A stretch of DNA of 63,575 nucleotides, filler included, from Reticulomyxa filosa (Eukaryota; Protista; Foraminifera), in assembly GCA_000512085.1 (NCBI GenBank). It is 17 parts of 17 records of this genome, joined end to end, with 100 filler letters (N's around TTAATTAATTAA, not from the genome) between each part and the next. Parts side by side here need not be neighbours in the genome. Positions count along the whole stretch, not along the records: positions 59,680 to 62,471 come from ASPP01031099.1; 16 more parts are not named here. One strand, given 5' to 3'. How positions within the stretch are numbered: the first letter of the stretch is position 1; each line of letters opens with the position of its first letter. Below the pieces are notes generated by a model. It was given only the letters and a program-made list of their open reading frames with translations. It made no database searches and was not told where the DNA came from. A program made the translations under genes and the position numbers. Positions 59,680 through 62,706 of the stretch are shown piece by piece.

Positions 59680-59842
59680 CGGGGCGATGGATGATCACTT
59701 CCCCGCGCTCTCGCATCGCCGTGCTGCGCGCCGCATCGGCGGCCTGTCCTTGGGTGCCATGCGTTGAGCCTGCTCGCGAAGCTCCCTCTCGACGGGTGGC
59801 CCACCTATCGCCATCGGGAACAACGTGGATGCGCTTGGACAT
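59680..59842 (-). CDS. DUF2188 family small protein (3' truncated)
   Basis: The true start is probably ATG 59842, preceded by the SD GAGAGGAG with 6-nt spacing. MSKRIHVVPDGDRWATRREGASRAGSTHGTQGQAADAAR...GEVIIHRP matches the DUF2188 pattern (HVVP..W.V..EG..RAS..TQ.EA...AR...E..IH). Confidence 0.85.
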
Positions 59843-59988
59843 AATAATCTCCTCTCGTTTGGCTTGCAGTGACAGCGCGAAGGTCGCAGAGCATTGGAGT
59901 GTTGTCAATACAAACAGTGGTATGTGCTTATTAAGCACAATGTTTGCCAGGTTGACATTGATCCCGTCGCAATACAAACTCTGGTATG
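59843..59988. promoter_or_regulatory. Divergent sigma70-type promoters with two operator-like repeats and a perfect palindrome
   Basis: Plus strand: TTGACA(59952-57)-N17-CAAACT(59975-80)-N5-ATG. Minus strand: TTGACA(59908-03)-N17-GACCTT. Repeat CAATACAAAC(AG/TC)TGGTATG at 59906-59924 and 59970-59988. Palindrome TGTGCTTA-T-TAAGCACA at 59923-59939. Confidence 0.7.
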
Positions 59989-60330
59989 GCTGACAAGGTT
60001 ATATACAAGGCGTTTGGCCTAGCGGTCGCTACGCGCCGCAGAGAGTTGAAGCTTACCCAAGCTCACTTAGCTGCCAGAGTGGGTATGTCTCGAGCTTCGA
60101 TCGCGAACATTGAAGGCGGGCGACAGAATGTATTGCTTCATCATGCATATCATCTGGCCGCTGCGCTTAATTTCTCAAAAGTTCACGATCTTTTGCCAGC
60201 GCTTCTCAAATTAACAGCGGAGAACCAAGTGGATACGGACAAAAGCGTTACGGCGCGAGGTAAGGCGGAGATCAGCAGCCTAATTGCCACTGCGCTAGCA
60301 ACGCGTAATCCAGCTAAGAGCGACTCTTGA
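59986..60330 (+). CDS. XRE-family helix-turn-helix transcriptional regulator (CapH/ImmR-like)
   Basis: RRRELKLTQAHLAARVGMSRASIANIEGGRQN is a canonical HTH_3. Its stop overlaps the next start (TTGA). Confidence 0.92.
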   Translation: MADKVIYKAFGLAVATRRRELKLTQAHLAARVGMSRASIANIEGGRQNVLLHHAYHLAAALNFSKVHDLLPALLKLTAENQVDTDKSVTARGKAEISSLIATALATRNPAKSDS

Positions 60331-60860
60331 CCAAAGTGATCAAAGCCAATCCGGAGCACGCTCGCGAAGTGGCGCGATTGGTCCTTCGAGACTTTGGAGC
60401 CAAGAGCGCGCCAGTGCCGGTGGAGCGCATTATCAAGAGCCGAAACATCATCTTGCAATATGCTCCTCTCGGAGAGGGCTTGTCTGGGATGGCTTTTATC
60501 AAAGATGGCGTTGGCATCATTGGAGTTAACGCACTTCATCATCCTAATCGGCAACGCTTCTCGGCAGCGCATGAGCTTGCGCACCACGAGCTTCACCCAG
60601 ATGAAATTCGCGAAGCGGTTCATGTTGACAAGGAATTCCGCGTTTTGCTTCGAGATGATGTTTCATCTCAAGGAATCGATCCTTTAGAAATTGAAGCCAA
60701 CGCCTTTGCCGCGGAGCTGCTGATGCCACAAGAACTTTTGCGTAGCAGCTTGGACGCAGTCGGCCTGGATCTAGAGGATGATGCAGGCGTTGAGGCGCTG
60801 GCCCGTAAATTCCGAGTTAGTACCTCTGCAATGCGCTATCGACTAGCGGGTCGATTTTAG
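60327..60860 (+). CDS. ImmA/IrrE (DUF955) zinc metallopeptidase (CapP-like)
   Basis: LSGM, IIGVN, RQRFSAAHELAH (HExxH), EIEANAFAAELLMP and LARKFRVSTSAMRYRL. Confidence 0.93.
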   Translation: MTKVIKANPEHAREVARLVLRDFGAKSAPVPVERIIKSRNIILQYAPLGEGLSGMAFIKDGVGIIGVNALHHPNRQRFSAAHELAHHELHPDEIREAVHVDKEFRVLLRDDVSSQGIDPLEIEANAFAAELLMPQELLRSSLDAVGLDLEDDAGVEALARKFRVSTSAMRYRLAGRF

Positions 60861-60870
60861 GCCTGTTCCA

Positions 60871-62283
60871 TTGAGCTACGTATTCTTCGACACAGAGACT
60901 ACTGGCCTACAGCGTGGGTTCGATCAAATTGTGCACTTTGCTGCGATCCGAACTGATGCGTCTCTCGCAGAGATAGGTCGATTTGAAGCGCGGGCGCGCC
61001 TTCTTCCGCATGTCGTGCCGCATCCAATTGCTTTGTGCACGAATGGACTGACTATCGGCGAGTTGGTCGATCATCAGCTGCCATCGCATTACGATATGAT
61101 TGGTGAGATCAGACACCAATTGTTGAAATGGTCGCCTGCGATTTTCGTTGGCTATAATTCAATTCGATTCGACGAGGAGATGTTGCGGCAGGCGCTATTT
61201 CAAGCACTGCATCCGCCATATCTGACGAGTAATCACAACAATTGTCGAGCAGATGCCTTGGGCTTGGTGATGGCTGCGGCTCTATTAGAGCCCGGCTGTC
61301 TCACTGTTCCAGTTACCTCGGAGGGTAGGCCGACATTTCGCTTAAGCGAAGTGTTGCAAGCGAATGGCTTTCAATATGGTCAGGCGCATGAGGCGATGGC
61401 TGACACCCTCAGTGTTTTAGAGTTGTGTAGACACGTCTGTGAGAAATCACCGGCTCTCTGGCAGAGATTTGTGCGATTCTCGAAGAAAGCGGCAGTCGCT
61501 GACTTTGTCGAAGCAGAAGACGGTTTTGTTTTTACAGAATTCTTGGCGAATCGAGCCCTGCATTCACTGGTCGTTTGCATCGGGCGAGATCCTCAACAGG
61601 CTAACAACTTTATATGTCTAAACCTGATGATCGATCTGGATCGGCTTGCCGCCCTGTCAGAAGGCGATCTGCAAGCTGAGCTCTCTCAAGACTCCAACTT
61701 GATTCGGCGACTACGAGTTAATGCGTCACCGACAGTTACCCCGCTGTACGAAGCGTCAAGTCAGATGTTCAACGGACGAACATTAGATGAAGTGGAAATC
61801 AGTGCTCGTCGTCTAAAAGAAGATCGACCTCTTTGCGCCCGTATCCTCGCCGCTCACCTGGCCACGAGGAAGGCCTACACTCATTCTCCGCATGTAGAAG
61901 AGCAAATTTACGACCGCTTTATAGACTCTGAAGACGAGCGACGTATGGCAGATTTCCATGACGTGCCTTGGCAAGATCGACTTGCCGTCGTTGAACGCTT
62001 TGACGACGAGCGCCTTAAAATATTTGGCCGCAGACTAATCTACTTCGAGCGTCGTTCCGTTCTGCCAAACGAAGTTCAACTACAGATCGAGCAGACTTTG
62101 ACGGAGCGACTTATTGGCAATGCAGATCGACCTCTAACTCTTGCACGGGCGCTCCACGAGACTAGCTCGTTGCTGCAAGGCGCTGATCTGAAAACGCGGC
62201 AGCTTCTTTCTGATTATAAAGATTACCTTGAGGCTAGAATTGATCGAGTCGTCAAGTTCCGATCCGGTCGTTTCGTTAATTGA
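60871..62283 (+). CDS. sbcB: Exodeoxyribonuclease I (SbcB-like DEDDh 3'-5' ssDNA exonuclease)
   Basis: 470 aa. FFDTETTG, QIVHFAAIRTD, GYNSIRFDEEMLR, GRPTFRL, AHEAMADT and C-terminal VEEQIY. Full-length ExoI size with catalytic residues intact. Confidence 0.85.
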   Translation: MSYVFFDTETTGLQRGFDQIVHFAAIRTDASLAEIGRFEARARLLPHVVPHPIALCTNGLTIGELVDHQLPSHYDMIGEIRHQLLKWSPAIFVGYNSIRFDEEMLRQALFQALHPPYLTSNHNNCRADALGLVMAAALLEPGCLTVPVTSEGRPTFRLSEVLQANGFQYGQAHEAMADTLSVLELCRHVCEKSPALWQRFVRFSKKAAVADFVEAEDGFVFTEFLANRALHSLVVCIGRDPQQANNFICLNLMIDLDRLAALSEGDLQAELSQDSNLIRRLRVNASPTVTPLYEASSQMFNGRTLDEVEISARRLKEDRPLCARILAAHLATRKAYTHSPHVEEQIYDRFIDSEDERRMADFHDVPWQDRLAVVERFDDERLKIFGRRLIYFERRSVLPNEVQLQIEQTLTERLIGNADRPLTLARALHETSSLLQGADLKTRQLLSDYKDYLEARIDRVVKFRSGRFVN

Positions 62284-62706
62284 CACGTTCTTCGGACGGT
62301 CCTTTTCGCTGCTGTATCGTGCTTAAAAGTTGCGGCCGTCAGATTGGTTGCGTTTAGCAAAAAGAAGCGAATCGAGGCTTTCCGCTGATCCGACTTTGAC
62401 GTTTGGTCGGCATCCATCACCCACCCGTGATCCCCCACCCCTGATCCATCCGCCCGCGTGCTACAGTACCANNNNNNNNNNNNNNNNNNNNNNNNNNNNN
62501 NNNNNNNNNNNNNNNTTAATTAATTAANNNNNNNNNNNNNNNNNNNNNNNNNNNNNNNNNNNNNNNNNNNNGTAATTAGTAATAGCATATATGTATATAT
62601 ATATGTACATATATACATATGTATATATATATATTTTTTTTTTTTTTGAAGCTTAATTTGCGGAGTTACTCTATTTGTATTTGTATCTGAAAAAAAAAAA
62701 AAGTAG

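Follow-up and report, generated by a model that had tools for sequence, protein, structure and literature searches.

The gene cassette described here lies on ASPP01031099.1, a piece of 2,792 bases with four genes at positions 59680–62471 of the 63,575-nucleotide stretch of DNA that was analyzed (17 joined parts, filler included; hereafter the window), taken from the Reticulomyxa filosa assembly GCA_000512085.1. On this piece an XRE-family helix-turn-helix (HTH) repressor, an M78-family zinc peptidase and an exonuclease I (ExoI)-like protein form one operon, divergent from a DUF2188 gene. The three genes make up a conserved and mobile unit, found mostly in Alphaproteobacteria, which is real, widespread and, it seems, undescribed. 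We put the probability at roughly 50% that its exonuclease is a co-induced sink for single-stranded DNA (ssDNA), setting the threshold and reset of a damage-responsive switch and convergent with Cap18. How cell-killing immune systems are held off, triggered by DNA damage and switched off again is an open question, and the cassette is a portable controller reused across CBASS (antiphage signaling systems based on cyclic oligonucleotides), Pycsar, Bil and Bub-like systems, and it carries a possible built-in reset.

The operon is compact. A CapH/ImmR-like repressor gene with an ATG start (59986–60330, plus strand; 114 residues) overlaps by 4 nt, at its stop codon, the TTG start of an ImmA/IrrE/CapP-family peptidase (60327–60860, plus strand; 177 residues), and after a gap of 10 nt a second TTG-initiated gene encodes a 470-residue ExoI (SbcB)-like DEDDh 3′–5′ ssDNA exonuclease (60871–62283, plus strand). 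On the minus strand, the 5′ part of the DUF2188 gene (PF09954; PADLOC candidate PDC-S16) fills 59680–59842; it begins at 59842, next to a Shine-Dalgarno-like hexamer at 59848–59853, and leaves the piece after 54 codons, full-length relatives having 73 residues. A longer DUF2188 frame from an ATG at 59977 is spurious, since homologues start at the position of 59842. Pfam (HTH_3/HTH_31; Peptidase_M78, 4.9e-24; RNase_T plus Exonuc_X-T_C; DUF2188, 1.7e-15), NCBIfam and PADLOC (capH, 4.7e-10; capP, 2.5e-32; RTasSbcB, 8.5e-99; PDC-S16, 2e-16) agree in their assignments. These calls and families concur with the first-pass annotation, which had described an XRE-HTH gene, an HExxH peptidase with the 4-nt overlap, a full-length SbcB-like exonuclease after the 10-nt gap and a divergent DUF2188. 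An Rfam search gave no match.

The closest loci retrieved in an exonuclease-first search, from genomes, metagenomes and plasmids, had HTH and peptidase genes directly upstream of the exonuclease. Peptidase-first searches, used to avoid the bias of searching from the exonuclease, placed it directly downstream of all seven plasmid peptidases at an identity of at least 48% and next to all six peptidases from a protein search. Conservation of the exonuclease beside an HTH/IrrE-type peptidase pair, proposed by the first-pass annotation as a test, was thus found in 13 of 13 close relatives. Four farther peptidases (38–46% identity) were without an adjoining exonuclease. Because the same gene order recurs in all close homologous loci, the arrangement of the trio is not due to chance.

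Phylogenies of both enzymes, from which partial and duplicate rows were excluded, point the same way. In the peptidase tree (27 rows) the exonuclease-linked peptidases all lay on one side of a single branch (100/96) and no loss was seen, a pattern that fits a single acquisition followed by long retention. Linked exonucleases fell in a 23-row group (91/99) far from the SbcB proteins of Escherichia coli and Erwinia, together with three unlinked rows, one nested (L096) and two basal (L095 and L100). Over 22 loci the pairwise identities of the three genes co-varied (Mantel 0.87, 0.91 and 0.85; p = 0.0005). The spacing between peptidase and exonuclease was −4 to 24 nt in all loci but one, and the exonuclease was on the regulator strand in every locus. 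The nested row L096 (1056–3133) carries a resolvase-like gene upstream of its exonuclease in place of HTH and peptidase.

Hosts were mostly Alphaproteobacteria. The cassette resides on repABC and other plasmids, conjugative ones included, and on elements resembling integrative and conjugative elements (ICE-like), beside type IV secretion system and relaxase genes and with changing flanks, and is present in cultured strains of Bradyrhizobium, Paracoccus aminophilus and Gluconacetobacter diazotrophicus. Many Bradyrhizobium genomes combine it with DUF2188, CD-NTase, E2 and SAVED genes (L151–L153:4351–9936); the source name of the Bradyrhizobium peptidase, Bll0069, presumably points to the model strain USDA110. 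Near-identical elements occur in Parvibaculum and Hoeflea metagenome-assembled genomes (MAGs; L001/L002), and L003 and L004, one from a Verrucomicrobiaceae MAG and one from a Tabrizicola MAG, also resemble each other closely; both pairs reflect either recent transfer or mis-binning.

The genes facing the cassette are defense operons. Among 26 distinct homologous loci with a visible divergent operon, in some of which the cargo was assigned by sequence cluster with a scanned member, this operon was CBASS in 12, Pycsar-like in two and ubiquitin-like (Bil/Bub-like) in 12. The CBASS cargo included types I, II, short II with E2, and III, with patatin, SAVED, SLATT or DUF6602 effectors, and the ubiquitin-like cargo included BilA/BilB-type, multi-ubiquitin plus ThiF, and E2-E1-JAB operons. 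DUF2188 headed the cargo in 11 of the 26 loci and was followed by CBASS in eight and by ubiquitin-like genes in three. The suggestion of the first-pass annotation that DUF2188 is probably the first gene of the controlled cargo, possibly a defense operon such as CBASS, holds in all 11 such homologues, the window's own cargo being cut off at the edge of the piece. The window DUF2188 is 72–85% identical to DUF2188 genes heading CBASS or ubiquitin-like operons, and in the nearest locus (L156; peptidase 87% and exonuclease 66% identical), which is sister to the window in the peptidase tree, DUF2188 is followed by a CD-NTase gene. Judging from these homologous loci, CBASS is the likeliest missing cargo of the window locus, and we consider this probable. 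The exonuclease was never inside a cargo operon and was never exchanged with the cargo, which varies between CBASS I/II/III, Pycsar, Bil and Bub-like operons. Since cargo is swapped while the three genes co-vary, the exonuclease belongs with the regulator.

The exonuclease has a full fold and an intact active site. Its model (pLDDT, the predicted local distance difference test score, of 93) matches ExoI over the whole length (template modeling [TM] score 0.85 to 4js4), with the full three-domain fold of DEDDh, SH3-like and helical domains. Catalytic residues D7, E9, D101, H173 and D178 are intact and kept in 119–120 of 120 homologues, and the ratio of nonsynonymous to synonymous substitution rates (dN/dS) is ∼0.08–0.25; nuclease activity is thus under selection. 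Of 216 conserved columns, the window copy differs from the family consensus at 26, more than any other of the 121 sequences (median 4). Decay of this copy was considered and is not supported, since no catalytic residue has been lost and its dN is 0.09–0.32 where dS is saturated.

It is also distinct from the housekeeping enzyme. The protein is ∼25% identical to E. coli SbcB and scores 189.6 bits against a cut-off of 260 for the NCBIfam sbcB equivalog; together with its separate clade in the tree, apart from gammaproteobacterial SbcB in the comparison that the first-pass annotation had called for, and its plasmid or ICE-like context instead of core synteny, this rules out a housekeeping sbcB. 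A phage gene was likewise rejected: no close homologue was found in viral contigs or phage records, where matches were pieces of host sbcB. In E. coli ExoI the pocket that takes up the C-terminal tail of SSB (single-stranded DNA-binding protein) is formed by R148, R316 and Y207, with R148 binding the tail. At these positions the window protein has E140 (Ser in 112 of 120 homologues), a gap and R199, respectively, and nearby Arg residues could substitute. Near this remodeled pocket, F200, R202 and F203 are conserved in peptidase-linked exonucleases and not in a sister clade of mobile SbcB paralogues. Docking of a C-terminal aromatic residue of the peptidase in the pocket was tried as an explanation and rejected: F or W is found there in 92 of 120 close homologues, yet it is absent from deeper linked peptidases and present in unlinked ones. 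The PADLOC RTasSbcB match raised the further idea of an accessory to a defense-associated reverse transcriptase (DRT), which is ruled out for this clade; motifs of reverse transcriptases (RTs) turned up only in sister-clade loci, and the sister clade is also the closer match to the model (518 bits for L007, one of its members, vs. 330 for the window exonuclease). A motif scan found no RT in any HTH-peptidase locus, the window's own cargo lying beyond the piece.

The peptidase shares the zinc site of CapP and lacks its GAF domain. The zinc site, H82, E83 and H86 of the HExxH motif plus E121, is present at each position in all 120 closest homologues, which are all 172–176 residues long. The model comprises a peptidase domain and an HTH-like domain, as in the first two domains of PprI, CapP and IrrE, and stops there, with no GAF domain (TM score vs. 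7t5t, 0.66 by query and 0.44 by target). R75, the equivalent of the peptidase-side ssDNA residue R90 of CapP, is kept in 120 of 120 homologues, and the GAF-side ssDNA residues are absent. The window peptidase has no cysteine at all; in the place of CapP Cys113, 13 residues past the second zinc His, sits His99, which like D101 is invariant (120/120). Residues 98–115, which contain this mobile H99/D101 loop, are the only internal low-pLDDT segment of the model. The loop makes a histidine switch plausible, and the same His-Val-Asp loop is found in three exonuclease-less relatives.

In CapP and IrrE, the groove that binds ssDNA lies between the peptidase domain and the GAF domain (PMC13228613). 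Truncation of the GAF domain leaves IrrE unable to bind ssDNA, ssDNA has no stimulating effect on ImmA, which is GAF-less, and GAF-less peptidases have been suggested to need additional components (PMC12828697). Because the window peptidase has no GAF domain and an invariant His at the position of the CapP Cys switch, direct CapP-style sensing of ssDNA is doubtful. The CapP-like peptidase of the first-pass annotation stands as to family, zinc site and pairing with a repressor; its short, GAF-less form had been missed, and the premise that ssDNA stimulates it as it does CapP is in question given the findings on truncated IrrE and ImmA (PMC12828697).

In the linker of the window repressor (HTH residues ∼80–92, window 60220–60260), three residues are missing relative to its nearest kin, and so is the hydrophobic Met-Ile-Leu stretch that these possess, where cleavage may take place; cleavage of the window copy could therefore differ.

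Between the two divergent units lies a conserved intergenic region with a predicted promoter/operator that had been overlooked in the first-pass annotation. For the cargo promoter, the predicted −35 box (minus-strand TTGACA, 59903–59908) is nearly invariant across aligned loci, and the predicted promoter of the regulator operon (59952–59980, plus strand) has a −35 box at 59952–59957 and a −10-like hexamer at 59975–59980. These back-to-back −35 boxes bracket an AT-rich predicted operator array (59909–59946), to which we infer that the HTH protein binds; it holds a perfect palindrome with 7-bp arms and a 3-nt spacer at 59923–59939 and more half-sites at 59911 and 59940. Of 150 loci, 21 showed the two-box pattern and 20 of these 21 were HTH-peptidase loci, against a shuffle expectation of ∼2.4 in all loci; a generic sigma-70 scan picked up neither of the two predicted promoters. 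The HTH start codon follows the plus-strand −35 box by 28 nt in the window and by 28–33 nt (mostly 29) in 26 of 26 exonuclease-linked loci, and because the box is so near, the repressor mRNA is probably leaderless. An operator placed between both boxes could control both directions, in which case the exonuclease would be induced along with the switch. A 19-nt direct repeat is a by-product of the operator half-sites and the −10 region.

The mechanism we favor builds on what was observed: the order of the genes, their conservation and co-inheritance, active sites that are intact, the architecture of the promoters and the cargo of the homologues. By homology and from the anatomy of the locus, the HTH protein would bind the palindromic operator between the back-to-back promoters and repress the cargo operon, in which DUF2188 comes first and a CBASS cyclase is the likeliest next gene; it would probably repress its own operon as well. 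An ssDNA-derived damage signal would open the His-bearing loop of the peptidase, probably relayed by a helper such as RecA-ssDNA; the helper is proposed because the peptidase has no GAF domain, and the idea of a RecA filament draws on ICEBs1 ImmA. The peptidase would then cut the repressor and both promoters would fire. Co-transcribed ExoI would digest 3′-ended ssDNA, its basal level holding stray ssDNA under the trigger; after induction it would clear the signal while fresh repressor accumulates, so that lethal cargo would be expressed as a pulse. Repressor cleavage, the nature of the signal, autoregulation and the direction of the exonuclease effect are the steps that we infer. For the known switches (CapH/CapP, CapW/BrxR and CapK/CapS), we know of no demonstrated reset.

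In favor of an ssDNA sink are the conserved activity of the exonuclease, its tracking of the regulator, and the recurrence of its relatives beside systems that respond to or make ssDNA. Precedents exist in host SbcB, which sets the activation threshold of DRT10 (10.64898/2026.04.29.721553), and in Cap18 (Liang et al. 2022), for which the review PMC10419184 gives the proposal that it removes ssDNA for CapW or CapH+CapP systems. Several points weigh against it. The GAF side of the ssDNA groove is missing from the peptidase, and ssDNA does not stimulate GAF-less ImmA (PMC12828697), so that ssDNA is doubtful as the signal here. Related GAF-less pairs front CBASS and Bub-like cargo without any exonuclease, so the exonuclease is not needed for the switch in general. 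Because the exonuclease link is one acquisition, the loci are not independent events. Finally, the sister-clade exonuclease may be a backbone gene flanking a defense hotspot.

The truncated peptidase invites a different role for its neighbor, in which the exonuclease replaces the GAF domain and, on ssDNA ends or via its products, activates the peptidase in trans, freeing the His loop from zinc. A peptidase that has no GAF domain and still keeps R75 and a putative auto-inhibitory H99 loop would suit such a partner, as would the suggested requirement of GAF-less peptidases for additional components (PMC12828697), the peptidase–exonuclease spacing in nearly all loci, as for coupled translation, and the residues F200, R202 and F203 restricted to linked exonucleases. 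We nevertheless rate it as rather unlikely: relatives that lack the exonuclease have this His-Val-Asp loop too and precede CBASS or Bub-like cargo all the same, no fusion occurs among the 120 best matches of either protein, the docking motif sought at the peptidase C-terminus is not conserved, and the sister clade pairs with WYL repressors that themselves sense ssDNA. If true, a repair nuclease would here transduce a signal, which would go some way to explain how ImmA-type peptidases without GAF are activated.

Other readings leave the switch without feedback. The exonuclease has an intact active site and would be co-induced with the switch, and its loci sit on ICE-like elements and conjugative plasmids, where ssDNA intermediates occur; it might serve as an effector or helper digesting phage, plasmid or repair ssDNA under stress. 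This option, also raised in the first-pass annotation, has become unlikely, since the gene follows the regulator in strand and inheritance and not the cargo; phage and viral collections, moreover, hold no close homologue. It is improbable that the exonuclease is a passenger or general repair gene, giving ExoI activity to hosts lacking sbcB and captured once beside the switch. One acquisition would explain the whole pattern, stand-alone relatives exist (L096 nested among linked ones; L097, L099 and L101 basal), and the window copy is unusually deviant at conserved columns; but the gene has been kept across 36–66% protein identity with saturated synonymous sites, while every other neighbor including the cargo was exchanged, and both its tight spacing and purifying selection have been maintained. 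A threshold- and reset-setting sink, an idea already put forward in the first-pass annotation, remains our preferred reading.

Comparison with known systems sets the cassette apart from each. Like CapH/CapP, it pairs an XRE repressor with an M78 peptidase, the two genes facing CBASS, DUF2188 and ubiquitin-like operons in divergent orientation, and shares the zinc ligands and the R90-equivalent arginine; the conserved palindromic array between two −35 boxes may correspond to the operator that CapH/CapP loci have beside the −35 box of the cargo promoter. CapP, however, has a GAF as the last of its three domains, about one in three CapP proteins have a Cys switch loop where the window peptidase has invariant His99, and the cassette co-encodes a third gene, the ExoI paralogue. 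CapH/CapP beside DUF2188 and ubiquitin-like operons had already been noted by Lau et al. (bioRxiv 10.1101/2022.04.27.489752); the word "exonuclease" is absent from that preprint and from the Bub preprint. ImmR/ImmA of ICEBs1 also combines a short GAF-less M78 peptidase (ImmA, 169 residues) with an XRE repressor on mobile elements, whereas its divergent operon holds excision/transfer genes rather than the CBASS, Pycsar or ubiquitin-like genes seen in 26 of 26 loci here, and the window-type peptidase has a conserved His loop and an exonuclease partner. Cap18 is a small RNase T/Orn-like protein. The review PMC10419184 presents it as a DEDDh 3′–5′ exonuclease that accompanies CapW or CapH+CapP and is proposed to clear the ssDNA signal, in which it resembles the window enzyme as read here, but as a homodimer encoded inside the CBASS operon; the window enzyme has a 470-residue ExoI fold, sits in the regulator operon, and its type is common to CBASS, Pycsar, Bil and Bub-like cargo. 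With E. coli SbcB the window exonuclease shares the full fold and the catalytic and most DNA-binding residues, and differs in clade, mobile context, low identity, a score below the NCBIfam cut-off, and Glu/Ser at the SSB-tail arginine R148. RTasSbcB belongs to the same wider family of mobile SbcB paralogues, for which a threshold role of SbcB is known with DRT10, but its model fits the sister clade better and no RT was found in the HTH-peptidase loci. Searches of the literature, which did not extend to most subscription journals or to supplementary tables, turned up no paper that describes an HTH-peptidase-ExoI module, in keeping with the first-pass annotation, whose author knew of no characterized three-gene module of this kind. 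With the cassette, both the activation of GAF-less ImmA-type peptidases and the possible histidine switch can be tested directly, and the cultured strains allow simple reporters.

The sister clade of the linked exonucleases occurs in Rhodobacteraceae mobile elements, in up to three copies per genome. In 18 of 52 loci (including L007, L021, L023, L035, L052:5103–7596, L054, L057 and L063) its exonuclease stands immediately upstream of a CapW/BrxR-like WYL gene, ahead of bacteriophage exclusion (BREX) and restriction-modification-like operons; 34 of the 52 have no adjoining WYL gene. In nine further sister-clade loci a different gene, WYL-WCX, lies ∼4.6 kb upstream, with an AAA ATPase between. 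RT motifs were found only in sister-clade loci L036, L061 and L073. The cassette, and the sister clade beside BrxR and DRT genes, suggest that ssDNA-responsive defenses bring their own ExoI into hosts. At L036:2446–6018 a sister-clade exonuclease stands beside a UG17/DRT10 RT, and at L061:8534–11359 beside a DRT3a RT; DRT10 is toxic without SbcB in E. coli, and these exonucleases may be self-supplied copies.

Some cargo operons carry additional genes. A DUF2235/Tle1-like phospholipase-domain gene recurs at their far end (L084:3724–5022; L154:2668–3954; L005:3163–4251; L076:8480–9901), accompanying cargo as varied as CBASS III, Pycsar-like and CBASS-SLATT, and may be an unrecognized shared accessory. 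Both Pycsar-like operons (L154:3958–7444; L005:4248–9035) encode a PycC-like cyclase and a second cyclase-domain protein, and L154 also an E2-like protein (E2-ntca, E2-Crich). In two different ubiquitin-like operons (L078:5023–10970; L079:5566–11405), UvrD helicase and PD-(D/E)XK nuclease genes follow the ThiF gene on the cargo strand.

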